A stretch of 64,000 nucleotides of DNA from Rebecca billardiae RCC1528 (Eukaryota; Protista; Haptophyta). The position numbers were made by a program, and so were the translations under genes. Position 1 is the stretch's first letter, and each line of letters starts with the position of its first letter. Positions 27,362 through 46,473 of this stretch are shown here, piece after piece. The notes beneath the pieces are model-generated. The model was not told the DNA's origin. It ran no database searches and saw only the letters and a program-made list of their open reading frames with translations. The stretch covers positions 992,001-1,056,000 of the forward strand of contig OZ251238.1 in assembly GCA_965240325.2 (NCBI GenBank). The letters run 5' to 3'.

Positions 27362-30300
27362 CTAGCCGATCCCTGCGCGGGGAAGGGAGCTGAGGGGACT
27401 GTCATCGAGCCCAGTAGCTGGGCAGGGGTCTGGGCCACTGGCCCTGGCAGCGAGGCGCCTGTATTTCACTCGTGCAGCTATGGAGGCAGAGGGGGTCATG
27501 TCAGACATGTGTGCTACATCGGGCATCAAGTCCGGGCGTGGGCAGCTGTAGGAAGCAAGCAAAGTGGTGGCGATGGCTAATACGCCTGGGGATGTGTCGT
27601 TCGCTCGCCTCTTCCTGCTGCGCTGTGCAGGGGGTAGCGTGCTCCGCTGCGGCACATTTGCCTGGCGGGGTGGGCAGTGTCGTTTGGGCGGGGGGCTGTC
27701 CTGCTGCGCTTGACTAGGAGGAGGCAGCCCGCGCCTGGGGGCTGCCGGTGGCCTGGCAGAGCCAGCAGGCGGCTGTGCGGCCTGCTGTCCAGTGTCTGAC
27801 TGTGTAAGGTCGCTGTGAGCTCCGTTACCAGTGTGACTGCCAGCAGCCGGGTCTGCCTCCATCTCAGGGCCCCCATGTGTCAACATATTGTCCGGCGGAC
27901 CCACATTGCTGCGAGCCAGCGGGGTGGCATATTGGAGCGGCCATGCCACAAGAGGTGTGGCAGGCTGCAGAGGCCACGCAATCACCATAGGGAGGGGGCG
28001 AGCACGCTGAAGGGGCCACGCCTGCGAGAGTGACTGGGGGCGCACGTGGTGACCGCGCGCTATGGGCTGGTGCAGGTTGGCCTGCCCCGCGCCTGCCTGC
28101 CAGCCCTGGCCAGCCTGGGCAGGGGGTTGCTGCTGGATGACAGGTGGTCCTTGCAACTGATTATTCATGGCAATCGCCCCTCCTGGGCCTGCCTGTGCCT
28201 GTGGGGGTGGGGGCTGCCCCCCTGGGCCGTGCCCAGGCGGCGGCCGAAGCTCCCTGGCATGTCGAAGGAGACGTCCTGCCTTCGACAGCTGGGAGTCCAC
28301 GTCCTTGCGGGCCTGCATGATGCCTAGCCCTGCCTTCAGTAAGGCCACGTGCATGGTCCTGCCGAGATGCACGTTGCCCCCCACAGTGGTCTTCAGTGTG
28401 CTGGGCACCCTGCCCATGAGAGCAGCCCCAGAGCACACGTGACGTGCCAAGTTCCATGCTGCAGCCTGTCCCTGCATGAATGGCTCAATTACATGCGATA
28501 CGCTTCTGGCAGCAGCCATTCGGTAGGCATCGACCTCAGGGCACTCAGAGAAGAGGTGGTGCTCAGTATCTGGCGCTGGATGTAGCAGTGGAGCATGATC
28601 GCAGAGGGGGCAGGCATCGCTAAATGCCGCCCCCGACTGGAATCGCACAGAGAGCAACGTCGGGTCTCGCAAGGCAGCAGGCTGCAGGAACTCATATCCG
28701 TGGTGGAGTATGTAGTAGGCAGGCACAGTGTTGGCCTGCCAGGTCCGTAGTACGCCAGTGGAGGCCTCTGGCCACACGCCGGTCCATTCACCCACCAAGT
28801 CACAGCTGGACTTGGTGACTTGCAGGTGGGTTGCCCTTTGTGATAGCACACTGTCATACACAAGGGGCTTGATTCGGCCTGCCACTGGCTCTCCATCGGC
28901 CAGCTGTACCATTGCATGGGAACCCGCATTTGGGTGGCCACCTCTCTTGTGAGTCACACAGGGGGTTGCGGGGTCAGAGCAGCAGAGCTTGGCCCCCGCA
29001 TCGCTGCATGCGTTGAGCAGGGTTTTGGGGTTCATCCCTGCTTGGCGCAAAGCCGCCACACTGTGTTGGCTGACAGTGCAGTGCTGGTCCCCCGGGTTGT
29101 GTGTGAGGCTGAGGTGTCGCGCAGCAGCATCGTCAGCAGAGTGCGCCTTGACATGCTCGAATGAAGTGGTGCTGCCATGCCGCAAGCGGCGCCAGCCCAC
29201 CAGGCTCATGACCCTGGCGATGTATGGGGCGTACGCGTGGTGCCCCTGCCGAAGCCGTCGGTCCCAGGGGTCGTTTTGCCACATTTCGGCGGCCTTTACC
29301 ATTTCCTGCAGGTCAGTGCACACCAGCAGGTTGGCGGTGGGGTCTATCTGCACCAATGCATCTGTGATGGCCATGAATTCGGCTGGGCCTGGTGCCTGGT
29401 GCCCCGCGAACTTGGAGCAATACACATGCACAGGGGCAGTGTAATTGTTGCCGTTGAAGAAGGAAAAGGCACACGCGGCCTGCCCGTTCTCTGCATCGAA
29501 TGAGCCGTCCGTGGCCACCATTAGCATGCCAGGCACAGGAAGTGCAGGCAGATGGCGGGGATTGGGTGGATCACAGACAGTACGCTTGGCGGCAGGCACG
29601 TGCCCCAGGTACCTGTAGTAGCTCTGGTCGGTCAGGACTGCCCTCAGCATATCCCTCACTGCCAGTATCACCGCCGGGCGGGACCTATGTGGCAGTGAGG
29701 ACAGCTCCGCATAGAACGCAGTGGAGACCATCTGTCTTGGTGGCTGTTGCATGAGCACACCTAGCAACACGTGCTGGGTACCGTCCACCAGTGAGTGCTC
29801 GATCCGGCTGAGCATCTCTCCGTTCGCGTCAGGAAGGCCGTGTGGTGCCAAGCAGGGGAGGGCAGCTGCCCCTGGCATTGCGGCGAGTCTTGTATATGCC
29901 CTGTGGGTCCGGTTTGTGGCCAGCATCCCGAGCCCGGGGGCCAGCTGCTGCATCAGCTTGCTGCCGAGATTCACTTCGGATGGGAGCAGTGCCCACCCCA
30001 TGCGTCGTACAGAATTTCTCCCGGTGACGATGGTGGAGGCAAATGTAGAGGCGCCGCGTACGCGCGCCCGTGCTGGGTGCTCTACTGATTGCAGGGCACC
30101 CATGGCTGCCATGGACGTGCGCGCACATAGCCCACGTGGGTCATCTGCCAGGAAGTGGTAGTACGCGTGTGCCTGGACACTCTCCAGGTGCGCATGTAGA
30201 TTGATGAGGCCTAGGCCCAGGAACTGGGGAGGAAAGCACGCTGCCTCGTATGCGATGCGCCCTGGCAGGGCAGCACTCCTGACCACTGGCTCCACCATGA

Positions 30301-33300
30301 GGCTTTGCAGCTGGTTGAGTCTGCCCCTGGACATGCCAACCACCTCGTAGAAGTAGAATAATATCGACGTGACATCCCACACAGTGAGCAGCTTTTTGGT
30401 CTCGGTGCAGCAGTCAGCTGCCTGCACCCGCGCGGCGGCTTTGGCCACTCTGGCCTTGAGACTGGCGAACATCCTGTCAGTTGCCAGATGAATGTTGGTC
30501 ACCACCCCTGCATACGTGAAGTATTCGCCATCCTGCAACGTGTCTATGAGAGCAGCTTGTCCAGTTGCCCTGTTGATGACCTGTATTGGGTCCACCTGTG
30601 CGTGCCCAGGGGGCACATACACTGCCACCTTGGATTTGGGGTAGTTGGGCTCCATATCATAGTACCACAAAAAGTCGACGAGGTCCTGCATCATGGCTGT
30701 GATGTCTGCTCTGCTGTGCGCGTACAAATTGATATCGTCCATGATAGCAGTGGCCACCACTGTCACCTGCCCTGCAGCAGCGTCCGCGTCGTCTGAGCTG
30801 CATTTGGACTGTACATGGTACCCGCCATGCCTGCTCTTCAGGTACCTGAGGAACATGTTGATGAACAGGCAGAACTTAGTGGAGCTAGCAGGGTCCCCTT
30901 GCTTCGTGCCACACCGTAAGCGTACACTATCAGTGGGCCCATATGGCGTCCTCACCACCACATCATGCCCCTCTCCTAAGGAGCGCATGAGGGTATAAAA
31001 CATGGCTGGGTACCCATGGCTGCGGAAGCCATCCTCAATGCCTTGGTATGGCACAGAGTCGAAGGCTTTTTGAATGTCCATCAGTGCACAAAACAGCGTG
31101 CGCCGGGAACGGTGTGCATCGGCCACCACATTGGCAAAGACAGCGACTTGCTGTACCACTTGCCCACCCTCTCTGCTGGCAGCCTGTTCCGGCTCGATTA
31201 GCCTGAGCCTGTCGGACGCAGCTTGCATGACGTTGTTTTGGTGTCTTGCCATGATTTTGTACACCACACTGTTGAGTGCTATGCCCCTGTAATTCCCGAG
31301 CACGTGCATATCCCCGTGCTTGTGTAGTGAGACAACCTCCCCTTGCTGGAGTCCGTCCAGAAGAGTCCCTGTCGCGTACATGACTGCGCAGAGATTAGAT
31401 ATAATAGTGGCGATCGGGCCAGGGTGTCCTGTCCCCTGTCCCCTGGCTGCCCCCTGCTGGGCACCAGTCTGCTGTGCAGCGTGCTGCCTGTGTGTGCGCG
31501 TGCCGCTTGGCAGTACAGGCTCGTCGCGCTCGGCATGGTGGCCTTCCAAGAGCTTGAGTACATTGTACTGTATGCCATCTGGACCAGGTGCCGAGTTGCC
31601 TCCCACCTCAGATGTGATGATGTGCCGTATTTGCGCGGGGGTGGGTGGCGTTCCGAGGGCGGTGACATATGCGTCCCCCGGATCAGTATGCCATGCGGCC
31701 CTAATGTCGTGCCACATATGACCTCCAGCGTGCCAAGGAGGCCTGCCCCCGGGCCGAGTGTATTGTCGCTCCAGAAGGCCCTGGTAGTGCCCCCTGTACT
31801 CCGATTTCACATCGTCAACGCTGGTGGCCAGTGCCCCATCGCTCCTTCTGACGATGGTAGGCAGTGTGATGGGGTCCTTGGCATACACCATGACACGCAA
31901 TTTATGCGAGTTCTTTTTGGTCTCAACCTTGACTTTGGCGAACCACGCCCTCTTTTGTTCCTCGGCCTGCTGCTGCCACACAGCTTTCACTTGCGCGCGG
32001 CTCGTCCTGCATTGCTGCTGCACGATTTGTCTCCAGCGCTGGTGGGACAGAAATGGCCCTACCGGCACCTGTCCGTGAGGCCCCATTGCCACTTGTATCC
32101 AGTGCTGGGACTGTGCAGCTCCAGTGCCCCAGGTCCGCTCGTACCTGCGCACTGCTCTGCGCACTGCTGGACCAGCTGGCAGCCCAGCAGCTGCTCTGTT
32201 AGCCAGAATATCGCCTGCATGCAGCGCAGCAGAAGCAGCATCTGCTTTGGATTTGTGTTGACCCGCTGCTGCGCCCGCTGTGGCTGGTCGGATCTTCAGG
32301 GGCGTGTCTGGTTGTCCGTCATATACACTGGGTTGCTCCAGTACAGTTGCCATGTCCCTGGTGGCCAGTGTGGTCAGGTGTCTCAGCGTTGTCAGCGCAG
32401 TGGCTGCTGTCGTCACCAGCGAAGGTTGCACCAGCATATGTGCCGGCACTGGGGCCTCAGCAAAGTCCGCAATGTGTAGTGGCAGGCCCTCCATCCACAT
32501 CGCAAGCAGCTGTTTGGCTTTATTCCAGTCAGGTGACGTCTTTCCCAGGTCCACGCGTATGTGCCTGGGAGGTTGCACTGGTGAGGCCAGTACTGCAGCA
32601 GCGCCGCGCAGTGCCACCGAGTGAATCCGGCCATATATTGGGACGTGTGCTCCTGGCATTCGCAGGGTGGCCTTTTCCGATATGTCCATGTGTCCGGTGT
32701 GCCCAACTGTGTCCATGTTGGAGAATATGTAGTCAATCACAGATCGATCCGCCCCATTGCCGTCCTCCCTGTGTGCAGTGATGAATGTGGGCCTTTCGAG
32801 CGTGTCCCATCGTGTGGTGCTGGGTATTTGGTTGAAGAGGTGGTCAGCGTCTGTCATGTATGTGCGGAACACTACCTTGGGGGTAGCCCCCTCCCCTGCG
32901 TTGCTGTCGTGCATGTGCCCATTTCCATCGCATGCTACCAATTGCAGCCTGGCAGCATGCCTGGCTACGTGCACAGCATGAGTCCGCATGTTGCCAGCTG
33001 TGGGAAGGCCTATGCATGTGCCTGTACGAAGGTGGTTGACTATGTGTGGAAGCAGCAGGTGCTGCCGTTCCTCATCATGCGGGTTGTAGAAGCAGCACAC
33101 CCACATGGGGACAGCCTGCCCATTGCCCCTGCAGAGCGTGATTTCACCCGAAATGATGTGCCCTGCCAGCTCTGGGTATAGTATTTCCCTGCCTCTGCAC
33201 ACACTGTTGAGGTGGAGCGATTTGGGTGCACCCACGTGTGCCTTGCGTACCAGGATGGCACACCCGGCCCTGGCACCTTTTTCGCCCTTGCGCCTGTCGC

Positions 33301-33583
33301 GGGCGTGCTCTGCATGTACTGTGTACTCCGGGAACGACTTGGCCCACCGCACTACCTGATGCGCAGGCATTTGGGTCTCCACCAAAAAGACAATATCAGG
33401 TGTCCCCACTGCTCGAATCCAAGTGGCGATGTCGTCCCGCCGGACAGAGGGGTCAGCCCCACCTGCTCCCCCAACATTGCAGTATGCATACGAGATGTCA
33501 GCATGGCTGTATTGGTAGCCCTGCTGCATTGGCGCTGCTGCTGCACCAGCAACACCTGGGCCTGCATCACCCTGTCCTATCAT
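27362..33583 (-). CDS. LINE ORF2: AP endonuclease, reverse transcriptase, RNase H, CCHC zinc knuckle (2073 aa)
   Basis: EN: YCNVGG, FLVET, FYNP, CDGN, IDYIF, GAHVP. RT: SAPGPDGI, NYRGIAL, DIQKAFDSV, GTKQGDPAS, IMDD. RNase H: ATDGS, AEFMAI, CTD, HVKAHS, NACSD. Zinc: CPLC...DTEHHLFSEC. Confidence 0.95.
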   Translation of the reverse strand: MIGQGDAGPGVAGAAAAPMQQGYQYSHADISYAYCNVGGAGGADPSVRRDDIATWIRAVGTPDIVFLVETQMPAHQVVRWAKSFPEYTVHAEHARDRRKGEKGARAGCAILVRKAHVGAPKSLHLNSVCRGREILYPELAGHIISGEITLCRGNGQAVPMWVCCFYNPHDEERQHLLLPHIVNHLRTGTCIGLPTAGNMRTHAVHVARHAARLQLVACDGNGHMHDSNAGEGATPKVVFRTYMTDADHLFNQIPSTTRWDTLERPTFITAHREDGNGADRSVIDYIFSNMDTVGHTGHMDISEKATLRMPGAHVPIYGRIHSVALRGAAAVLASPVQPPRHIRVDLGKTSPDWNKAKQLLAMWMEGLPLHIADFAEAPVPAHMLVQPSLVTTAATALTTLRHLTTLATRDMATVLEQPSVYDGQPDTPLKIRPATAGAAAGQHKSKADAASAALHAGDILANRAAAGLPAGPAVRRAVRRYERTWGTGAAQSQHWIQVAMGPHGQVPVGPFLSHQRWRQIVQQQCRTSRAQVKAVWQQQAEEQKRAWFAKVKVETKKNSHKLRVMVYAKDPITLPTIVRRSDGALATSVDDVKSEYRGHYQGLLERQYTRPGGRPPWHAGGHMWHDIRAAWHTDPGDAYVTALGTPPTPAQIRHIITSEVGGNSAPGPDGIQYNVLKLLEGHHAERDEPVLPSGTRTHRQHAAQQTGAQQGAARGQGTGHPGPIATIISNLCAVMYATGTLLDGLQQGEVVSLHKHGDMHVLGNYRGIALNSVVYKIMARHQNNVMQAASDRLRLIEPEQAASREGGQVVQQVAVFANVVADAHRSRRTLFCALMDIQKAFDSVPYQGIEDGFRSHGYPAMFYTLMRSLGEGHDVVVRTPYGPTDSVRLRCGTKQGDPASSTKFCLFINMFLRYLKSRHGGYHVQSKCSSDDADAAAGQVTVVATAIMDDINLYAHSRADITAMMQDLVDFLWYYDMEPNYPKSKVAVYVPPGHAQVDPIQVINRATGQAALIDTLQDGEYFTYAGVVTNIHLATDRMFASLKARVAKAAARVQAADCCTETKKLLTVWDVTSILFYFYEVVGMSRGRLNQLQSLMVEPVVRSAALPGRIAYEAACFPPQFLGLGLINLHAHLESVQAHAYYHFLADDPRGLCARTSMAAMGALQSVEHPARARVRGASTFASTIVTGRNSVRRMGWALLPSEVNLGSKLMQQLAPGLGMLATNRTHRAYTRLAAMPGAAALPCLAPHGLPDANGEMLSRIEHSLVDGTQHVLLGVLMQQPPRQMVSTAFYAELSSLPHRSRPAVILAVRDMLRAVLTDQSYYRYLGHVPAAKRTVCDPPNPRHLPALPVPGMLMVATDGSFDAENGQAACAFSFFNGNNYTAPVHVYCSKFAGHQAPGPAEFMAITDALVQIDPTANLLVCTDLQEMVKAAEMWQNDPWDRRLRQGHHAYAPYIARVMSLVGWRRLRHGSTTSFEHVKAHSADDAAARHLSLTHNPGDQHCTVSQHSVAALRQAGMNPKTLLNACSDAGAKLCCSDPATPCVTHKRGGHPNAGSHAMVQLADGEPVAGRIKPLVYDSVLSQRATHLQVTKSSCDLVGEWTGVWPEASTGVLRTWQANTVPAYYILHHGYEFLQPAALRDPTLLSVRFQSGAAFSDACPLCDHAPLLHPAPDTEHHLFSECPEVDAYRMAAARSVSHVIEPFMQGQAAAWNLARHVCSGAALMGRVPSTLKTTVGGNVHLGRTMHVALLKAGLGIMQARKDVDSQLSKAGRLLRHARELRPPPGHGPGGQPPPPQAQAGPGGAIAMNNQLQGPPVIQQQPPAQAGQGWQAGAGQANLHQPIARGHHVRPQSLSQAWPLQRARPLPMVIAWPLQPATPLVAWPLQYATPLARSNVGPPDNMLTHGGPEMEADPAAGSHTGNGAHSDLTQSDTGQQAAQPPAGSARPPAAPRRGLPPPSQAQQDSPPPKRHCPPRQANVPQRSTLPPAQRSRKRRANDTSPGVLAIATTLLASYSCPRPDLMPDVAHMSDMTPSASIAARVKYRRLAARASGPDPCPATGLDDSPLSSLPRAGIG

Positions 33584-34611: not shown

Positions 34612-37600
34612 ATGGGCTTCCACCCGACCCTCCTACCCGGCCCAACGCCATCGGCGGGGCGGCGCCGTACGTCCGGCGTGGCCGACCGCTTCGGGCACGC
34701 TGTGTCGCGCGCCGCACGTCGGGCGCTCCGCTTGCCGGCCAAAGCCGTCACCGTCGCGCCCGAGCCCGCCGAGCCTGACGGCGGCGCGGGTGGCCACAGC
34801 CCGCCGAGCACGCCGCCGGCGCACGCGCGGCGCGGCATCCTGCGCGCCGACGGCGGCGGGGCCGGCCGGCGGCACCACGCGCACAAGCGCGTCAAGTGGC
34901 GCGCTGTGGTCGTGGGCGACGACGTCGCCGACCAGGAGCGCCGCGAGAAGGCCGAGGCCCAGCTCGAGCTGCGCGAGCGGCTCGCCCGGCTCGAGCGCTG
35001 GTCTCAGATCGCGCGCCTGCCGGCGCTCACGTACGAGGAGCTGCTGATCCCGGTGCGCGTGGCGCTGCCCGGCCTGGTGATGGAGCACGCGTTCCCGATC
35101 CTGCTCGACGTGATCGTCGACGTGTACGAGCTCGTGTGGATGCTCAACTCGATCCGCGTGCAGCAGGGCCGCCGGCTGACACGGCAGGAGCAGCAGCAGC
35201 AGCAGCCGGCGCGCGCGGGCGCGGAGGGCGCGGAGGCCGAGGTGCGCGCGGCGGCGGCGAGCGGGGACTACACGCGGTGGCGGATCGCGCGCGACCTCGG
35301 CGTGATCGCCCTGCTCCACGCCGGCCGCGCCCTCTACCTCACCACCGGGCGCATCGAGCTGTTCACCGCCGCCCAGCTTTTCCGGTGCCTGAAAGTCCGG
35401 GACCTTCTTGCCTACATGAAGCAGATCAACAGCGACCTCTCGACGAACGTGACCTTCCTCGCGGTGCGCGCGCGCGCGCCCGGCGCCGCGGCCCGGCCCG
35501 CTGGGTCGCCGCCCGGCCGGCCGGCCCTCCCGCCGGGCCGTCACGCGAGGGTGTGCCTGCGAGCGCGCGCGCGGCCGCGCTGCTGGCTCATTCGTGCGCG
35601 CGTGGGCGCGCGCGCGTCCGTCCGATGGGCCTGCTGTGCGGAGGGCAGGTGTACAAGTTCGCGCTCGTGCTGGTCTCGGTGCCGCACTGGGTCGCGTGCA
35701 TCTGGTGGGTGCTCACCGAGCTGCTCCCCGAGGGCGAGCCGCTCGCGCTTCCCTCGTGGTCGGCACAATTCGAAGTGCAAACGGGAAATCCGAAAATGAA
35801 TCCGACCGGAGCGCAGGGCCACCAGCACTACCTGCTCTCGCTGTACATGGCGTGGGCGGGGGTGAGCGCGATGGGGTACGGCTCGATCGTGCTCGTGGCC
35901 AAGCGCGAGATCCTCTTCGCCGTCTTTGTCGGCGTCGTCCAGATCGTGCGCGCGCCGCACGGCGCGCGCGCATGCGCGGCCGTGGCGGCGCGCGCACGGG
36001 GCGCGCGCGCGCTCGCGCGCCGCCCCCCCTTCTGATGAGGCCCGCGGCTGCGCCCTCCCGCGGCGCCGGCGTGGCAGGTGTTCTACGCGTTCGTGCTCGG
36101 CACCCTCTTCCACTACCTCGTGCGCGTCGACGAGAACACCGTGCACTTCAAGGAGCTGATGCGCGCGGTCGAGAAGTACACATCCGAGCGCGCGCTGCCG
36201 GACGAGCTGCGCGCTCGGATCAGCGCGCACTTCGCCTTCCAGGTGCGCTCGGTGCGCGGGTTGGGGTTGGGGTTGGGGTTCGGGTCGCGCGCGGATCAGC
36301 GCGCACTTTGCGCTCCAGGTGCGCTCGGTGCGCGGGAGGAAGGGGCGCGCGGGGCGTGGGCGCGGCGTGGCGCCGGCGTGGCGGCGGTGCCACTCGCCGA
36401 GCGGAGCGGAGTGCTGCGGCGCGGCGCCGGGCACGAGGCCCGTGCGTGCCTGCGCATCCGGCGAGCGCGCGCCGCGCGCCGCCAGCGCTGACACCCCAGA
36501 GCCTCTGTCGCGCGCGGCGGCCGCCGCGCCGCGCGCCCCCGGTGCCCGCGCTCCCGCGCCGCGCGTCCGCAGCACTCGAAGCACGCGTCGGGCACCGAGC
36601 AGATCTTCCGGCAGATGCCGCTCTCACTGCGCACGGAGGTGGCGCTCGAGCAGCACTCGATCCAGCTCGTGAGCACGTGGCTCCTGTTCGGGTGCACGCC
36701 CCAGTTCCTGCACCACATCGCGCTGCACCTGCGCGAGCGGTTCGTGCTGCCGCGGGAGACGCTGTTCAAGCGCGGCGACGGGAGCACCGAGCTGCTCTGG
36801 TGCGTGGGCGGCGCGCTGCACGTGAGCAAGGCCGAGCAGCACATCGCCACGGTGCGCTCGGACATCGGGCCGGGCCAGATAGTAGGCGAGATTGCGTTCG
36901 TGGTGGGGGTGCCGCAGCCGTACACGGTGGCCGCGACGGCCGCGGGCGAGGTGACGCTGCTCGTGCTGAGTACGCGGGCGTACGAGGACACACTCGGCGC
37001 GTTCCCCGAGCAGGCGGAGCGCATCCTGCACACGCTGCTCCGCCGCTTCGGCCTCGACAAGTCCGGCGAGGAGTCCGGTGCGGACGCGCCCGGCGTCGAC
37101 CTGAGCACGCTCGACGACGACGAGGCGCGCGAGTTCCGCGCGCTCCAGGCGACGATCCGGACTGCGATCATCGAGCGGAACGAGGAGCAGCACTTCCAGA
37201 TGGCGCACGCCGTGCTGTCGAACGACACGGAGGCGGTGCGCGCGCTCGCCGCGCGCGGGCTCGACCCTGACATCCGCTCGTATGATGGGCGCTCCGTGCT
37301 GCACCTCGCGTCGCGAGATGGCAATCTGGGTTTAGTCAGGCTGCTCGCGCAGCTCGGCGCGGACGTGCACGCCGCCGATCGGTTCGGGAGCACGCCGATG
37401 CGTGAGGCGGTGGCGCACGGGCGCGCGGACGTGGCGGACGAGCTCGCGCGCCACGGCGCGCTCCTTCGACTTGAGCACCCGGCCGCGGCCGTGCACGGCG
37501 CCGCGCGCGCCGCCGACCTCGAGCAGCTGCGTATTCTGATTAGCCACGGCGCCGACATCAACGCGCGAGACCACGACCGGCGCGTGGCGCTGCACATCGC

Positions 37601-40316
37601 GGCGGAGCGGGGGACGCTCAAGCTGGCGGAGTACCTGCTCGCCGGCCTCGCCGACGTCGGCGCGCAGGACCGCTGGGGCCGCACGCCACTCGACGAGGCG
37701 ATTGAGCGGCGCTTCACGCTCGTGGCTCAGCTGCTCAAGCGCAAGTCGGCGCCGTCGTCGCGCGCCGCGCTCGGCCATCGGCTGCGCGACGCGGCGGCGG
37801 CGGGCGACGCGCGCGAGATCCGCTTCCTGCTGGAGATGTGCGCGCCGATTGACGAAACCGACTACGACCTGCGCACGCCGCTGCACTACGCCGTCGGCGC
37901 CGGCTCTCTCTGCGCCGTGCAGCTGCTTGCTGCCAGCATGGCCGACGTGTCGCGCGCCGACCGCTGGGGCGCGAGCGCGCTCGTGCTCGCGCTGCGGACC
38001 GAGCGCCTCGCGCTCGCGGCGGTGCTCGCGCACACGGGCGGCGCCGAGCTCGTGCCCGGCCTCCCGGACGACGGGCTGCTCCGCGAGGCCCTCGAGCGCG
38101 CCCTCGAGCTGCGCGTCCGCTCGATCAACGCAATCATCCACGCGCGCGCGCAGGCGCGGCGGCGCGCGGCGGCGCGCACGCTCGCTGTCTCGCACGAGGT
38201 CGAGCTCGAGCTGACGAATCTCGCGCAGGAGATGCGCGGGCTCGAGCGCGCGCAGGGGCAGCTGTTCAGGCTGCTCGGCCGGCACGTGGACGCGTGGGTG
38301 AACGAGTGTGCGTGCCGCCCCGCCCGCCCGCCGCGCGCGCGCGCGCGCGCGCGCCGCGCGCGACGGCCGTGTGCTCGCGCTGTCTGCGCGCCGCGCGCGC
38401 CAATCGGCGCCCGCGCGCGCGCGCGCGCGCCCGGCGCGCGCTCGCGCAGACGCGGTGGAGGACGAGGACGAGGACGAGGACGACGCCCTGAGCGCGTCGA
38501 GCGGCTCGCTGGCCGAGCTCTCCGACGACGGCTCCGCGTCGGACGGCGGCGCCGGTACGCCGCGGTCTGTTGGTTTCGCGCGCGTCGACGGCGGCGGCGG
38601 CGGCACGGGCGGCGGCGGCGGCGGCGCGGGCGGCGGCGCGGGCGGCGGCGAGGGCGGCGGCGAGGGCGGCGGCGCGCGCGTCGGCAAGGAGGGCGGCGGC
38701 GCGGCCGCCGAGGCCGAGCCCATCGCCGCGCAGAACCAGTTCATCAAGCTGATGCTGCAGCTGCCACGCGCCGAGTCGGGCCTATGCGCGATGCGCGAGC
38801 TCTTCCGCAAGCAATTTGGGCCCGAGCGTTTCGGCGGGCTGCCCGGGCCGGTGCGGCGGCATCGCGAGGACTTGGCGCTGCGCCGGCTGCTGCGGGAGGA
38901 CCTGTACCTCTCCGAGCCCGCGGCGCACCAGATCGCGCTCGAGATCTATGCCGAGCTCGCCCGACTGCTGCTGATGCCCGCGCCCTCGCGCGCCGCGCAT
39001 GATGAGGCGTTGCGCGAGGCGGCGGCCGCGGCCGCCGCCTCCGCGGCGGGCGCGCCGGCCGACGCGGCGGGCGGCGGCGGCGGCGGCGGCGGCGGCGCGG
39101 AGCCACCGACCTCGGTGGCGGCGGCGGTGGCGGCGGCCGGCGCCGCGGCCGGCGCCGCGGGCGCGCGCGCGCGCTCGCCGCCCGGCGCGCACGCGCGCCA
39201 GCCGCGCCACGGGCAGTCTCACGCCAGGCGGCCCGCGCGCAAGCTGAGCGGCGGCGGCGGCGGCGGCGGCGGCGGCCGCTCGGCCAAGCCCAAGTTCGAC
39301 AAGGCGAGGGCGGTGCGCGAGATGCTGCGCCACTCGGCGCACACGGGCTCGACGCTCGTGCGGCTGGCGAAGCTGGCGCACGGCGCGCCGCTGGAGACAG
39401 TCGGAGCGGACGCGGGCAGCGGCGCGGGCGAGCACGTGGTCAGCCTCGGAGAGTTCCGGGAAAGTATCGCGCCGGCCGTGTTCGCTTCGGAGCTGGGGCA
39501 CGTGATTTTGTTCTGCTCGCCCACGCTGCTGCACTCGCTGCGCGACCGGCACGCGCGCGCGGGGCGGCCGTGGCTCGCGGGCGCGGCGGGCGCGGGCTCG
39601 CTCGATGACAGAGAGCGTGTGTGGCGCGGCTTCGGCCTCTCGCCCGGACCGCTCCGATTCCGGACGCAGCGCGGCTCCGCGAGCGTTGGCGCTTCGCCGG
39701 AGGGCGGGCGGCGCGGCGCGGCGGGGCTGGGCTCGCCGGCCGCGCCGCGGCAGGGGCTAGCACGCCCGTCGTCGCTGCTCTCGGCCGGCGGCGCGGCGCA
39801 GGTGTCCAACGGGTACCGGCGCAGGCGTCGAACTGATGATCCCTCGCTGCCCTTCGGCGCGCGCGTGCCGCCGGCGGTGACAGCCGCGCCGGTCTCGCCG
39901 GAGCAGGAGGGCTCGGGCGAGGCTGACGCGTCGGCGGAGCGCGCGCCCGCGCAGGGCCGGCGGGCACGGCGCTGGACGGGCGACCCGTCGGCGCCGCCGC
40001 CCGCGTGGGCGCGCGAGCTCGCCGCACGCTCGCGTGCCCATCTGCTCGATCCTCCGACGCTGCCGCCTGCGGCCGGCGCCGACGCGGACGCGGAGCCAGC
40101 AGCCGAGCCGGGCGCGACAGCGCGCTCGGCCGGCGGCACGACCGATGACTCGGCCGGCGCGACGCCGCGCGCGTCCGGCCGGCGCTCGCGGCGCTGGACG
40201 GGCGACCCGGCGTCGCTGCCGCCCGCGTGGGCGCGCGAGCTCGTCGCGGCGCGCTCGCGCGCGCTCGACCCGCCCTCGCCGCCGCCGCTGCCCGTCGGTG
40301 GCTCCAGCCCCAACAT

Positions 40317-40354
<38 letters not shown>

Positions 40355-43300
40355 ATGAGGCGAGTGGACGGCTGTGCGCGCCGCCGCCGCCGATGCCGAC
40401 CGGCGCGTCGTCCCCCGAGCTCGTGCGAGCGGCCGAGCCGGGCGGCAGCGGCGGGGGCGGCAGCGGCGCCGGGCAGCGGCGGCAGCGCTCCTCCTTCTTC
40501 GGCGCGGGCGCGAGCCCCGGCGGCCGCGACGTGGCGCGGCGCCCGTCAAGGCTGCTGCACAGGGCGGCGGACCGCGCCGCCGCCGCCGCCGCCGCCACGC
40601 CCGCGCACGACTCCTCCGCGTGTGCGGCGGCGGAGGCGGCAGACGTGGACGAGACTCAACACTCTGCCGAGAGCCTCCACCGGCGCCGTGAGCTGCGCGC
40701 CGCCATCGCCGAGTCGATCCACGTGATCGCCGCGCTCTTCGCGTACTGCGACAAGCGCGGCAGCGCGGCCGTGCGCATGCGCGACGTGCGCGCTCTGCAG
40801 TCGACCGTCGGCGACGCGAGCTCGGGCGAGATCAAGGCGCTGATCGCGACGCTGGTGGACACGTCGCGATCGCTCGGCCGGCCGCTGCTCGCGCCCGCGA
40901 CGGCCGGCGCCGCCGCCGCCGCCGCCGCCGCGGAGGTGCGCCTCGACCCGATGGCGCTCGCACGGCCGCTGCCGCCGGCGGGCGGCGCGCAGCAGGCCGC
41001 CGCCGGGCGAGTCGGCGGCGGCGCGGCGCCGGGCGCGCGCGCGGAAAGCGGCGGCGGCGGCGCGGTGCAGCCCGCGCAAGGAAAGTCTCGGGACGCGCCG
41101 GCGGTCGCGGTGGCCAGCGCGGCTGCGCCCGGCGGCGGGCCAGCCGGCACCGCGCCCACCACAGGCCTCGACGCCCCGGGCGCCACCTCCGACGCCCCCA
41201 CCGCCGCCGCGCTCGAGGGCCCTCTATTCCCCGCGACACTGAGCAAGATGCGGAGCAATGGCGGCGGCGGCGCGGCGGGTGGTGGGGCGGGGAGCGCGCC
41301 ACACCGGGGTGGCGGCACGGCGGACGTCGGCGCGAGCGTCGAGCGTACGCCCGCCCCGCCGCCCGGCGCCGCCACCCCGGCCGCCGCCGCGTCGTCCGCC
41401 TCGGCGCAGCCCGGCTCGGCGCAGTCCTGCTCGGCACAGCCCGGCTCGGCACAGCCCGGCTCGGCGCAGCCCGGCTCGCCAGGCGGCGGCGAATCGCGGG
41501 TCGGCCGTCGGCGGCGCAGCAGCGCGGGCGGCATTGAAGGGATCGAAGGGCTGCGGACGAAGCAGCGCGCGCCCAAGGAGATGAGCGAGGCCGCCTTCTT
41601 CCTCGGCGTCGCCACCTGGATCCTGACCGAGGCCTCGGAGACCGAGCCGGAACCGGAGGCGGCGGCGGGCGGCGCGGCGGACGCGGCGGACGGCGGTGAG
41701 GCGCCGTCGACGGCGGTGCCGACGGCCGCCAGGGGCGGCGGCAGCGGAGGCGGCGTGTCCGAGCGGCGCGCCGACGGGGGCGGCGGGAGTGCCAGCACGG
41801 CGGGCGCCGCGCGGCCAGCCGCCCCGCCCGCCCCGCCCCGGCTTTCGCTCGACGCAGTGCACCGGGCGGCCGGCGCCGCCGCCGCGCCGCCGCCAGAGCC
41901 AAGGGCGGCGGGCGGCGGCGGCGGCGGCGCAGCGGGCGCGCACGACGCGTCGCACCCCACGCACAGCTTCGACGGCGGCGCGTCCGCGGCCGAGCGCGGC
42001 GCGCCCCCGGACGACGCCGCGTCCGCCGACGCCGCGCTCCTCGCCAACCTGACCACCGCGGGCGCTTACACCGCGCTGGCGGACGCGCTTGAGCAAAGGT
42101 TGGACGCTCGCCGAATGGTGTCCGAGGACGCGGTGCGGTTGGCGACGCTTGTGGCGCTCGTGCACGCGATCGTGACGCTGCCGCCCGGCGTGACGAGCGC
42201 GCACATCGAGCGCTGGTGCGCCGCGGAGCTCGGGCTCACGCTCGCGCGCGACGGCGAGGCGGCGGCTGCGAGCGGCCGGCCGCAGCCGCAGCCGCAGCCG
42301 CCGTCGCCGCAGCGGGCGGCGGGCGGCGGCGCGGTGGCGGGCGGCGGCGCACCGGGCTCCGGCGCGGGCGGTGTCGCGGGCGAGGACGGCGGCGCGGAGG
42401 CGGCGCCGCGCGCCACGTGGGGCGCGCTGCTCCGCCAGCTGCGCGCCGCCGCCCTCGCGCTCCGCGAGGAGGGCGCGCGGCCGCGGCGCGCCGCGCGCCT
42501 CTCCGCGGCCGCGGCGACTCGCAGCGCGTATCGCACGCGCGCGACGTTGCTCTCGGCGCTCGGGGTGCGCGTGCCCGAGCGCAAGCTGCTGCCCGGCGAG
42601 GACGGCGGCGCGGGGATGCCCTGGTACCTCATCTCCGCCTCCTCCCGCGCCGCACGCGCGCTCCGCCGCATCTTCCTCCTCATCTCGCTGTGGGATTTTT
42701 TAATGCTCCCGCTCGAATTATCGTTCTGGCACGCTGCGCGGCACGTGCCGGCGTTCGGCTGGGTGCAGCTGGGGATCGACGCGTGGCTGATCCTGCACAT
42801 CGCGCTGCGCTTCCACACGACGTACGTCAACGACAACTCCGTCGAGGTCACCGCGCCCAAGCTGCTGCGCTGGTGCGCGCCGCGCGCGCGCGCGCGCGCG
42901 CGCGCATGCGCCAATGCGCAGCGCTCGCGCCCGGCGCATTGGCGCGCGCGCGCGCGCGCTCGACAGCAGCCCGCGGCCCTCCCCACGCCCCGCCCCGCCC
43001 CGCGCGCACAGGCACTACATGCAGGGCGACTTTGCGCTCGACATCTTCGCCGCGTGGCCGCACAACCTCCTCGCCCTCGCGCTCGGCGCGCGGCCTATCG
43101 TCGTCGTGCTGCTGCGGCTCACTCGGCTAGTGAACACGCGCTACCTCAGCGCCGCGTTCGGCGCGTGGCGGCGCTCGCTCGCGGACGACGACCTGTCGAG
43201 CGGGATCCTGGCGTACGTGGCCGGTCTGCTCGTCTTCACGCACGTGTGCGCGTGCGTCTTCAACGTGCTCGGCAACTCGGAGATTGCAATCTCGGCGCTC

Positions 43301-46300
43301 GGCGTGACGTGGACGCAAGTGTTTGACGGCTTCGAGGCGTCAGTCGGCGGCTCGCACGGCGCGCTCTCGCCGCTGGACGAGCTGGTGTCGCACTACCTCG
43401 TGTCGTACTTCTACTGCCTCGCGATCATCTCCGCCCTCGGCATCGCGCAGGTGCCCGCCAACTTTGTGGAGACCGTCGCGTACATCGTAATGGCCTCGTG
43501 CAACATGACTGTGTTCGCGTGGGCGGTCGGCGGCGTGTCGGGGCTAGTGATGCGGCTGGACGAGGAGACGGTGAAGAAGCGGGCGCAGCTCGAGCTGGTG
43601 AACTCGTACATCCGGCACATCGACGTGCCGCCCGAGCTCAAGGCGCGCCTCCGCCTCTTCTTCACGCAGCGGCTTCAGACGGCGTCGCTCTCGTCCGTGA
43701 GCGCCGAGCAGGTGTACGCGCAGCTGCCGATGGCGCTGGCGATGGAGGTGGCGACGCACACGAACCGCACGCTGGTGGGCGGCGCGGCGCTGCTGCGCGG
43801 CTGCTCCGCCGCCTTCCTCGACCGCCTCTCCGCCGCGCTCAAGGAGCGCGAGCTCGACGCCGAGGCGGTCGTCTTCCGCGCGGGCGAGGCGTGTGCGGAG
43901 CTCCTGCTGATCGCGTCCGGTGCGATCGAGGTGCTCCCGGACTCGGAGGAGCCCGAGGAGGCGCCGCTCGACGAGGGCGTCCTCGGCGAGCTGCTCATCG
44001 CCGGCGACACCGTCGGCGACGTGGCCTTCGCCTTTGGTGCGCGCGACGTCAACGCGCCGCGCGCAGCCGCGCCCGGCCGCCCTCGCCGAGCGCGCTGCGC
44101 CGGGGGCTCACGGCCCGCGCGCGCGCGCGCGCGCGCCCTGCGCGCGCGCGCACGCATGCAGGCATCCGACACATCAGCTCGGCGCGCGTGATGCGCGGCG
44201 CGAACGCGTCGGTCTTCTCGCTGCGGATGGGCGCGTACCGCGAGCTGCTCAAGGCCTTCCCCTCGCAGGAGGACTTCGTCATGGAGAATGCGATGCGCGC
44301 ATACGAGGGTGCGCGCGCGTGGCCGTTACGTGACCGTTACGTGGCCGTTACGTGGCCGTTACGCGCACGCGCGCTCGCGGCGCACTGAGGGCGCGCGCGG
44401 CGCACGACGTCACCCGCGCTCGCGCGCGCGCCCCGTCGCCCGCAGGCTCGCTCACCTCCCGCTCCAAGATGTCCTCGCGCTCGCTCGGCAGCTCGGCGCC
44501 AGGCTCGCCCGCAGGCTCCGTCCGTTCTGACGGCGCTCTGAGCGCGCCTAGTGCTGGCGGAGGCGCGGCGATGTCGGCTATTGCGTCGGACGGCGGCGGC
44601 GCCGGCGCCGCCGGCGGCGCGGGGCAGCAGCACGACGAGCTGCGCAACGTGCAGAAGATCCTCGCGGTGGCGAAGCGGAAGCGCACGCAGCTGCACCACG
44701 CGCGCCTCTGCTCCGCCTGCGCCAAGGGCGACGCCGACAAGGTGGGTAGGCTACTTTTTGCATCGGCGGAGGCGGTGGTGGACTTGGCTGACGGAATGGG
44801 TCGGCGCGCGCTGCACCTTGCGGCGTGCGGCGGCTCGGCGCAGGTGGTGCGGCTGCTGCTCGGCGCGAGGGCGGAGCCGAGCGCGGAGGACGAGCGCGGC
44901 GTGACGCCGCTCACCGAGGCGCTCACGCACGCCCACGCGCAGGTCGCTCAAATCCTCGAGGCGGCGGGCGCACGACACGGCTCCAACCGGACCGCCGCCG
45001 GCGGCGAAGGCGGCCTCGCCGAGCGCGCGTGCCTCGCGGGCGCGAGCGCGGACGGCGCGGCGGAGCTGCGCCGGATGGTGGCGTACGGCGCGGACGTGGG
45101 CGTGCGCGGCGCGGACGGGCGCACCGCGCTGCACCTCGCCGCGGCCGAGGGCCACCTCGCCAACGCCGCCCTGCTGCTTGACGCGCGCGCCGACGCGTGC
45201 GCAGTCGACGCGCGCGGCCGAACGGCGCTCGCGGAGGCCGTGGCTGCGAGGCACGACGACGTGGCCGCGCTGCTGCTCGAGCACGGCGGCTCGCTGGGCT
45301 CGCTCGACGCGCCGCGCGCGCTGTGCGAGGCCGCGGCCGCCGACGACGTCGCGCAGCTCGCGCGCCTCCTCCGCTTCCGCTGCGAGATCAACTCGGCGGA
45401 CGAGCATGGGCGCACAGCCCTGCACCTCGCGGCCTCCTGCGCCCATGTCACCGCCGCCAACTTTTTGCTGCAGGCGGCGCCGGGCGTCGTCGCGGTGAAC
45501 GCGGAGGACTGGCAGGGGTGCACGCCGCTGGACGACGCGGTGCGGGTGGAGGCGGGGGCCGAGCCCGTGCTCAGCACGCTGCTCGGCGCGCACGGCGCGC
45601 GCCGCGGCTCTCGACGCCCGAGCCCGCGGGGCGGCGGCGGCGGCGCGGGCGCGGGCGCGGCGGCGGCGGCGGCGACGACGACGGCGGTGGCTTCGGCTTC
45701 GGCCGCCGCGGCGGCGACGGAGGACGAGCCGGACCTGGAGGAGCGGATCATCGCGCAGGAGGCCGCGGTGATCGGCGCGCGCGAGGCGCTCCTCGCGCGC
45801 GTGCTCGCCGTGCGCGAGTGGACGCGCGCCGAGCGCGACGCGACTGGCCGGCTGCGCGCGCTCGTCGACCGCGCGCTAGCGCTCGAGCGCGAGCGCGGCG
45901 CTGTGCTGGCGGACGAGCTGCCGGAGCTGTGGGAGGGGATCTTCGAGTTCGCCGAGGCGCACTACCTGTGGCACGGCGCGGCGCTCAAGACGGTGCAGCC
46001 CGCGCTCGAGGAGTGGCAGGCCGAGGCGGCGGCGTACGCGCACGCCGCCGCGCGCGTCGTCAGTGAGAAGGTTCGAGCGCGCGCCGTGCGCCGCGCGCCG
46101 TTGTGCCGCGCGCAGCGCGTGCGCGATGATTCGCGAGCGGGGGGCGGAGCCGGCCGCGCGCACACGCCGCCCGCGCCGCGAGCTCACGCGCCCGCGGCGC
46201 CTCTGCCCCAACACCTCCCATCGCCCTCCATGGCCGGCACAGCTCGCCGAGCTCCTGCGCTGCCACGACACGGGCGCGCGGCCGGTCGAGCGCCTGTACG

Positions 46301-46473
46301 AGGTCACCTTCAGAAAGCCGGCGAGCAGCGCCCACCGCGGCTCGAGCGGCCGGCTCGCTGAGCTGATCGAGGCGGGCGGTGATATCGACGGGCGTGCGAG
46401 GCGGGGCGGCGGGGCGGCGGGGCGCTCGGGGAAGCGGGCAGCGCGCCCGGCCATCGCGCGGTACACCATGTAA
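34612..46473 (+). CDS. Giant (~3,499 aa) tandem Shaker/SKOR-like channel, 2 x [6TM-cNBD-ankyrin]; exons 34612-35463, 35649-35945, 36078-36242, 36573-38307, 38450-42872, 43012-44036, 44162-44308, 44446-46070, 46243-46473
   Basis: Module 1: pore SAMGYG, C-linker LPDELRARI..HF, cNBD VGEIAFVVGVPQPYTV, ankyrins (YDGRSVLHLA, DRWGRTPL). Module 2: LWDFLMLP...RFHTTY...HYMQGDFALD, pore SALGIAQ, cNBD, ankyrins. Eight GT-AG introns give 10,500 nt in frame. Confidence 0.8.
44318..44363. repeat. 11-bp tandem repeat (CGTGGCCGTTA) x4 within an intron
   Basis: Direct reading; one copy has a G>A change. Confidence 0.85.

Follow-up and report, generated by a model that had tools for sequence, protein, structure and literature searches.

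A predicted covalent tandem of two ankyrin-bearing CNBD-superfamily channel modules with mismatched selectivity filters in the haptophyte Rebecca billardiae

The window analysed here is a 64,000-nucleotide (nt) stretch of the Rebecca billardiae RCC1528 genome (contig OZ251238.1, positions 992,001 to 1,056,000). At 34612-46473 on its forward strand we find, reading from the sequence, an intact nuclear gene of a GC-rich alga that is predicted to encode one chain of 3,499 residues, a covalent tandem in which two diverged channel subunits from the superfamily with a cyclic-nucleotide-binding domain (CNBD) are joined. Nine exons and eight introns yield a coding sequence of 10,500 nt, that is 3,499 amino acids (aa) plus the stop codon, running from the ATG at 34612 to the TAA at 46471-46473. 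Both copies of the module have the order six transmembrane helices (6TM, S1-S6), C-linker, CNBD-like domain and ankyrin repeats, and a linker of ~1,390 aa lies between them. The two selectivity filters differ: the translation gives SAMGYG at 35865-35882 for module 1 and SALGIAQ at 43430-43450 for module 2, exactly where an earlier sequence-only reading of the window had placed them. The features are given below, with the evidence that places each; P numbers are homologues, L numbers are paralogous loci in the same genome, and GC3 is the GC content at third codon positions.

34612-35463, + strand: exon 1, with the N-terminus, a conserved H-K-R-V-K-W motif and the voltage-sensor-like S1-S4 of module 1 (GC3 frame 1; alignment to P0001 and paralogues)
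35649-35945, + strand: exon 2, with S5, turret, pore helix, filter 1 and the first half of S6 (translation)
36078-36242, + strand: exon 3, which completes S6 (second half, FYAFVLGTLFHYL) and begins the C-linker (51-71% identity to paralogues, where it is contiguous with the exon 2 equivalent)
36573-38307, + strand: exon 4, with the end of the C-linker, the CNBD-like domain (~36738-36989; phosphate-binding cassette GEIAFVVGVPQPYTVAA), the ankyrin repeats (~37210-38010), followed by a helical tail that closes with WVNE (Pfam and SKOR alignment)
38308-38449, + strand: intron 4, 142 nt, GTGCGT...CAG, phase 1, 90% GC, at the joint of module 1 and the linker
38450-42872, + strand: exon 5, 4,423 nt, with the linker and then module-2 S1-S2 (42619-42870) (open GC3 frame and matches of conserved linker islands)
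43012-44036, + strand: exon 6, with S3-S4 (LLRLTRLVNTRY), S5, pore helix, filter 2 (SALGIAQVPAN at 43430-43462), S6, C-linker and the first part of CNBD-like domain 2 (phmmer, hERG match, AlphaFold2 model and Foldseek)
44162-44308, + strand: exon 7, with the remainder of CNBD-like domain 2; cassette ...GDVAFAFG/IRHISSARV, the slash marking the splice (tblastn of P0001 and P0006)
44446-46070, + strand: exon 8, with a Ser/Gly-rich spacer, the module-2 ankyrin repeats (~44690-45530) and a helical C-terminal region (Pfam; tblastn of P0001 residues 2187-2654)
46243-46473, + strand: exon 9, with the conserved C-terminal motif VERLYEVTFRKP, the tail and the TAA (P0001 residues 2671-2699 placed at 46237-46323 by tblastn)

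The gene region is 70-82% GC, and its coding frame is sharply marked by GC3, the frame switching exactly at introns that can be drawn as GT...AG. Seven of the eight introns read GTGCG[CT]...CAG and the eighth GTTCGA...CAG; the majority are 78-90% GC and contain (GC)n runs. The junctions among exons 1, 2 and 3 are validated by the intronless paralogues, which read through contiguous equivalents of these exons. Using tblastn, residues 64-262 of P0001 were placed at 34831-35460 in exon 1, and exon 7 matched P0001 residues 2139-2187 as well as P0006 at 61% identity. The least certain junction of the gene model is that between exons 8 and 9 (46070/46243), where the donor GTTCGA at 46071 is atypical. 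An alternative donor for this last intron, GTGAG at 46063, has no in-phase acceptor, and 46070/46243 was retained by homology to the C-terminus of P0001; the C-terminal motif of exon 9 is also present at the C-termini of P0001, P0002 and P0006. All searches and folds used single exons or uninterrupted paralogue open reading frames (ORFs) as queries.

The two modules very likely belong to a single tandem gene, because the GC3 frame, a splice-junction match in a homologue, collinear homologues, single-ORF paralogues and the seamless equivalents of exons 1-3 all point to one gene. The GC3 signal of the module-1 frame (frame 0) fades at ~38300, with the first stop in that frame only at 39002, and frame 1 shows a GC3 of 0.85-0.97 from ~38350 to 42870, stop-free over 4.4 kb. 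The open run of exon 5 is 1,473 codons, and 0 of 500 shuffles gave one as long; together with the GC3 phase and the homology, this leads us to reject the frame as a chance product of 80% GC. Splicing 38307 to 38450 restores the frame and creates the junction peptide WVNE-Y-AVEDEDED, compared with WINEYAVEEEED at the same place in P0006. Three homologues, P0001 (2,704 aa), P0004 (2,647 aa) and P0006 (2,730 aa), are collinear with 34831-46323 in tblastn, linker islands included. Their alignment ends coincide with the proposed splice sites, and their Pfam order is pore/cNMP/ankyrin, a long gap, then Ion_trans/cNMP/ankyrin. Of the relatives, P0004 comes from MMETSP as a transcript, and the transcriptome of Rhodelphis marinus supplies P0019, P0022 and P0023; we infer that P0001 and P0006, from JGI/IMG contigs of 8.2-8.4 kb that are almost wholly ORF, are transcripts as well. 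In the R. billardiae genome itself, L012:326-8365 is an ATG-started, uninterrupted ORF of 2,680 aa with both modules, and L011:263-8197 is an uninterrupted 2,645-aa ORF with the same Pfam order as L012. The claim of the sequence-only reading that nine exons splice in frame into one gene with two SKOR/AKT-like modules is thereby upheld by GC3, homologues, paralogue ORFs and, as described next, folds.

Module 1 resembles a plant Shaker channel. The exon that encodes its CNBD-like and ankyrin domains (exon 4) aligns continuously with SKOR residues 376-731 (E 9e-45) and is matched by Pfam cNMP_binding (32.4 bits) and Ank families; SthK also matched this CNBD. The cassette GEIAFVVGVPQPYTVAA is of the SKOR PQPYTV type and not of the P-R-x-A-T type, SKOR reading IPQPYTV at the aligned position. 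Pfam found no match to S1-S4 in exon 1 and placed Ion_trans_2 on exon 2 at E 0.0028, under the curated cutoff. Since Pfam gave no more than sub-threshold matches on single transmembrane exons, the channel identity of these exons is drawn from homologues, matches to PDB entries and models. The AlphaFold2 (AF2) model of module 1 was built for the intronless paralogue L099, which is 42-56% identical to the window exons, from an alignment that included window exons 1-3 as separate rows. This model has a predicted local distance difference test score (pLDDT) of 82.8 and a predicted TM-score of 0.73, S1-S6 are present, and Foldseek ranks AKT1 first, aligning 316 of 348 columns. For the window gene, alignment to the paralogue model supports a module 1 with six transmembrane helices, whose S4 carries R/K/R as basic residues.

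For module 2, exon 6 matched hERG (E 2e-16), SKOR (6e-14) and also SthK among PDB entries, over a span from S3 through the CNBD, and a phmmer search with it returned 2,538 matches with tandem proteins on top. The AF2 model of exon 6, built from an alignment of 26 paralogues, has a pLDDT of 78.8 and contains S3-S6, with a pore helix at residues 120-139 that ends directly before SALGIAQ. Foldseek aligned this model with hERG, SKOR, CNGA1, TAX-4, SthK and AKT1 over ~340 columns. Module-2 S1-S2, at the end of exon 5, gave a weak Pfam Ion_trans match (E 0.075) and align with the Ion_trans regions of the homologues, and the ankyrin repeats of exon 8 are matched by Pfam Ank_2 (109.9 bits) and related families. 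The expectation that Pfam would find each domain twice was therefore borne out for cNMP_binding and Ank, and for Ion_trans_2 and Ion_trans only below threshold; that both modules have a true pore domain is supported by the hERG and SKOR matches, AF2 and Foldseek, with module 1 represented by the paralogue model. Each module accordingly has S1-S6 with a P-loop, a C-linker and a CNBD fold, the features of the CNBD-channel superfamily.

The canonical phosphate-binding Arg is absent from both CNBD-like domains of the window gene. At the position of the HCN4 Arg, the module-2 cassette has Lys in the paralogue L012 by alignment and Ser in the window gene, where the residue was placed by eye. Pfam scans of ORFs spanning both C-terminal regions found no match at E<=0.01 to KHA, the C-terminal domain of plant Shaker channels; these proteins carry a different conserved C-terminal motif, LERLYE-x-TFRKP.

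SALGIAQ lines up residue-for-residue with S-V-G-F-G-N of hERG, so that G-I-A stands opposite the hERG G-F-G. Filter 2 had been likened to non-selective CNG channels for its missing YG, and YG is indeed missing; the likeness is imprecise, though, because the Tyr and second Gly are lost by substitution and not by the two-residue deletion of the CNG type. The 72-Mb assembly (41 contigs) contains 41 further module-2-type loci that are 40-57% identical to that of the window. For 38 of the 41, a module-1-type match on the same strand is located upstream at a distance of 4.5-7.3 kb, and many of the pairs share one open frame, which gives an estimated total of about 39 tandem genes with the window gene included. 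The pore regions of the paralogue loci were aligned to one profile, covering 27 module-1 and 42 module-2 filters. Every module-1 filter has Gly-Tyr (27/27), distributed as GYG in 20, GYA in 5 and GYT or GYV in 2. Module-2 filters invariably keep the first Gly (42/42) and never have the Tyr (0/42), which is replaced by an aliphatic residue; the second Gly is found in 5/42, Gln at +3 in 35/42, Pro at +5 in 42/42 and Asn at +7 in 36/42, for a consensus of (T/S)xLG-aliphatic-x-Q-x-P-x-N. Since the two filter types are each conserved across this census, the mismatch is a conserved rule of the family and not the decay of one copy, and the asymmetry first noticed in a single gene is strengthened. Homologues elsewhere also keep it, with SMGYG and TALGIAQVP in P0001 and ALGYG and TTLGMESMP in P0004. 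Three paralogues, L035, L036 and L038, have deletions in the module-2 pore helix or filter.

The genome also contains non-tandem CNBD- or Kv-type modules with the canonical filters TVGYGD, TIGYGD and TVGYGE, namely L055 (G000:C32:598864-600188), L092 and L098 (G000:C10). Two module-2-type units (G000:C8:1488362-1489399 and G000:C8:1555387-1556400; 44% identical) lie in open frames of 12,933 and 13,615 aa with no module-1 match listed nearby; these may be giant genes or open frames driven by GC.

The linker had been described as ~1,400 aa of low complexity. Its composition fits that description (Ala 22%, Gly 16%, Arg and Pro 9% each, over ~1,390 aa), but it also contains at least four conserved islands, at 38728-38991, 39478-39564, 40693-40875 and 42091-42243, which match the L011 and L012 ORFs and P0001, P0004, P0006, P0008 and P0151 in the same order. 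Pfam found no domain in the linker, islands included. On visual inspection alone, the island at 40693-40875 resembles a pair of EF-hands, although it lacks several of the canonical positions for Ca2+ ligands. A homologue search with the linker exon returned no match, low-complexity words having swamped the 8,000 candidates. Together the islands probably make up a domain with a regulatory or scaffolding role.

A tree of 78 modules from a quick search separates the two halves of the protein. Module-1 units form one clade (Shimodaira-Hasegawa-like approximate likelihood ratio support 100), and module-2 units form a separate clade (95) joined by module-2-like single hits. The window exons fall in haptophyte sub-clades (97) that contain proteins of Diacronema lutheri, the nearest named relative. 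Because the two clades branch internally in parallel, modules 1 and 2 appear from the tree to have co-evolved tightly. The window gene belongs to a family of ankyrin-bearing tandems, as each of its modules groups with its counterpart, the linker islands are collinear and the C-terminal motif is shared. Named members come from Diacronema lutheri (KAG8466681.1 and KAG8464917.1), Rhodelphis marinus, Cymbomonas tetramitiformis (KAK3264010.1) and Bryopsis sp. (GMH40854.1), and the family is large and old, being present in green algae and Rhodelphis as well as in haptophytes. The stramenopiles Bicosoecida and Platysulcus have two-repeat proteins too; these lie in the other half of the tree, which suggests an origin independent of the ankyrin-bearing tandems.

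One relative has a different N-terminal half. In P0005 (2,567 aa; JGI/IMG contig of 8.5 kb), four PAS_9/LOV-type domains (NCRFLQG) and an RGS domain replace module 1, followed by the linker islands and a module-2-type Ion_trans-cNMP-ankyrin unit. P0005 could be a fusion of light sensor and channel, or a duplicated or chimeric assembly, its N-terminal block being repeated verbatim.

Introns differ among the paralogues, and intron gain or loss seems to have been active in the tandem channel family. The window gene has introns that the intronless paralogues do not have, and many paralogues (L100, L102, L103, L109, L110, L116, L117 and L010) have an apparent intron in the module-1 pore helix, directly after YMAWAGMT, that is absent from the window gene. 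Within the window gene, intron 3 (36243-36572) contains at ~36295-36330 a sequence nearly identical to the final ~25 nt of exon 3 and its GTGCGC donor, and intron 7 (44309-44445) contains a tandem 11-nt repeat, gtggccgttac. Upstream on the - strand, at 27362-33583, is a retrotransposon of the long interspersed nuclear element type with a 2,073-aa ORF (~57% GC; Exo_endo_phos and RVT_1) that ends 1 kb before the channel gene starts.

We propose, by analogy with TPC and K2P channels, that two chains would assemble into one pore of four modules, with module 1 and module 2 in alternation. We consider the chances of this alternating arrangement to be about even. The pore filter would then consist of two K+-type strands and two strands that keep the first glycine only, and such mixed strands would be expected to relax K+ selectivity and produce a less selective cation pore. 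Gating by voltage together with the CNBD-like/ankyrin ring would be more likely than gating by cAMP or cGMP, because the phosphate-binding Arg is absent in both CNBD-like domains; the S4 of each module has approximately three basic residues. A cryo-electron microscopy (cryo-EM) report on the GORK tetramer describes a reduction of symmetry from C4 to C2 (PMC12742848), and with CNBD-ankyrin units in alternation this C2 arrangement of the cytoplasmic part would be permanently built in. For the reading as a whole, i.e. a tandem gene, an alternating pore and this mode of gating, we estimate a probability of roughly 0.55.

Several observations weigh against this reading. The linker of ~1,390 residues is long enough for other assemblies. 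Module-1 S1 and S3 are weakly hydrophobic in the window protein, with only S2 clearly above the hydropathy threshold, and the modelled S1-S6 are those of the 42-56% identical paralogue and not of the window protein. Foldseek TM-scores for the two module models are modest (0.36-0.54). At the transcript level, an internal promoter or retention of intron 4 may occur, and retention is predicted to yield a module-1-only protein ending at 39002. The relatives P0002, P0151 and P0010 begin within the linker and may be truncated assemblies or genuine module-2-only forms.

The alternative that fares best, although we regard it as unlikely, is that four chains assemble with segregated pores, four copies of module 1 forming a K+-type pore and four copies of module 2 a second pore tethered to it by the linkers. 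Each module is complete from S1-S6 through the C-linker and CNBD-like domain to the ankyrin repeats, the linker with its disordered Ala/Gly/Pro/Arg stretches could hold the modules apart, and plant Shaker modules are known from textbooks to tetramerise alone. However, the well-studied tandem 6TM and 2TM channels (TPC, K2P, CNGK and Nav/Cav) all form one pore (textbook; PMC7576140), the parallel branching of the two modules suggests tight co-evolution, and no conducting precedent is known for a homotetramer with G-aliphatic-x-Q filters.

It is somewhat less probable still that module 2 is a non-conducting pseudo-channel with a regulatory role as sensor or scaffold and that conduction takes place via module 1, alone or with other subunits. 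Silent regulatory Shaker subunits such as AtKC1 do exist, and the module-2 filter lacks the Tyr in 42/42 and the second Gly in 37/42 cases, with pore-helix or filter deletions in L035, L036 and L038. Against this, the strong conservation of the pore helix, Gly143, Gln146, Pro148, Asn150 and S6 across the 42 paralogues and in other species argues for selection on the pore loop, and AF2 keeps the geometry of pore helix followed by loop with a pLDDT of 80-86 there. Least probable is that the modules are made mainly as separate subunits that form ordinary tetramers or heteromers, through intron 4 retention with the stop at 39000-39002 and/or a promoter in exon 5: frame 0 does stay open to 39002 when intron 4 is kept, and P0002 (1,773 aa), P0151 (1,977 aa) and P0010 (1,715 aa) carry module 2 only, but GC3 moves to frame 1 at ~38350 and is unbroken to 42870, the junction peptide is kept in P0006, relatives have full-length single transcripts, the intronless paralogues are single ORFs with no stop between the modules, and P0002 shares a 90% cluster with the longer P0151 and is thus likely truncated.

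If the alternating pore of two tandem chains is correct, a wider proposal can be made tentatively, and we hold it to be rather less probable than the assembly itself: haptophyte-type algae, with some green algae and Rhodelphis, may rely on a large, undescribed class of obligate two-fold-symmetric channels, in which a K+-type strand alternates with a conserved G-aliphatic-x-Q-x-P-x-N strand and whose selectivity and gating would be novel among characterised CNBD channels. Were this true, the ~39 genes of the expanded family in a 72-Mb genome would make up much of the equipment with which the cell signals electrically and ionically.

Tandem CNBD channels as such have been seen before. The known systems considered in the sequence-only reading, plant Shaker channels and four-repeat sperm channels, were an incomplete list, since two-repeat tandems were first reported in 2020 by Pozdnyakov et al. 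in dinoflagellates and oomycetes, from sequence only (PMC7576140); the ~39 paralogues and the wide family found here also have to be added. Like the window family, the 2020 tandems have two 6TM-CNBD repeats per chain, and their first and second repeats separate into clades of their own, a sign of specialisation. Both of these repeats have TVGYG-like filters, ankyrin repeats are unmentioned, and no tandems were found in other groups, haptophytes included (PMC7576140). What the window family has beyond them is a pair of ankyrin domains, a long linker that includes conserved islands, and a second filter without GYG. Neither a tandem CNBD channel with ankyrin repeats nor such a filter pair was described in the papers that full-text literature searches returned. 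What is new here relative to the 2020 tandems is thus an ankyrin-bearing, filter-mismatched version of an already known tandem type.

Among single-module channels, SKOR, GORK and AKT1 share with both modules the order of S1-S6, C-linker, CNBD-like domain and ankyrin repeats, and module 1 additionally shares the PQPYTV cassette with SKOR and has GYG in its filter. Plant Shaker channels have one module per subunit and four identical filters, whereas the window gene has two modules in one frame. Compared with the plant Shaker T-x-GYGD, filter 1 (SAMGYGS) keeps GYG with different flanks; filter 2 (SALGIAQ) does not fit T-x-G-Y-G-D, and module 2 has no plant counterpart. The CNGK or tetraKCNG channels of sperm have four concatenated CNBD repeats in one pore-forming chain, compared with two in the window gene. 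Four-repeat CNGK-like proteins were among the weaker matches and lie in a separate part of the tree, and no ankyrin motifs were found in the two four-repeat matches examined.

The closest parallel for the proposed assembly is with TPC and K2P channels, in which a dimer of two-repeat chains makes a two-fold symmetric pore with two types of filter strand (textbook). These are unrelated subfamilies with no CNBD or ankyrin, so their likeness to the window gene would be one of principle only. Filters that are half K+-type normally need engineered concatemers, whereas ~39 natural examples are present here, in each of which a GY(G/A) strand is coupled to a non-GYG strand that is itself conserved, on a scaffold closely related to SKOR, GORK and AKT1, which have cryo-EM structures. 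The family could therefore show how two-fold symmetric filters set selectivity, whether the C4-to-C2 break of plant Shaker cytoplasmic rings can be hard-wired, and how fluxes of K+ and other cations are managed in marine algae of ecological importance.

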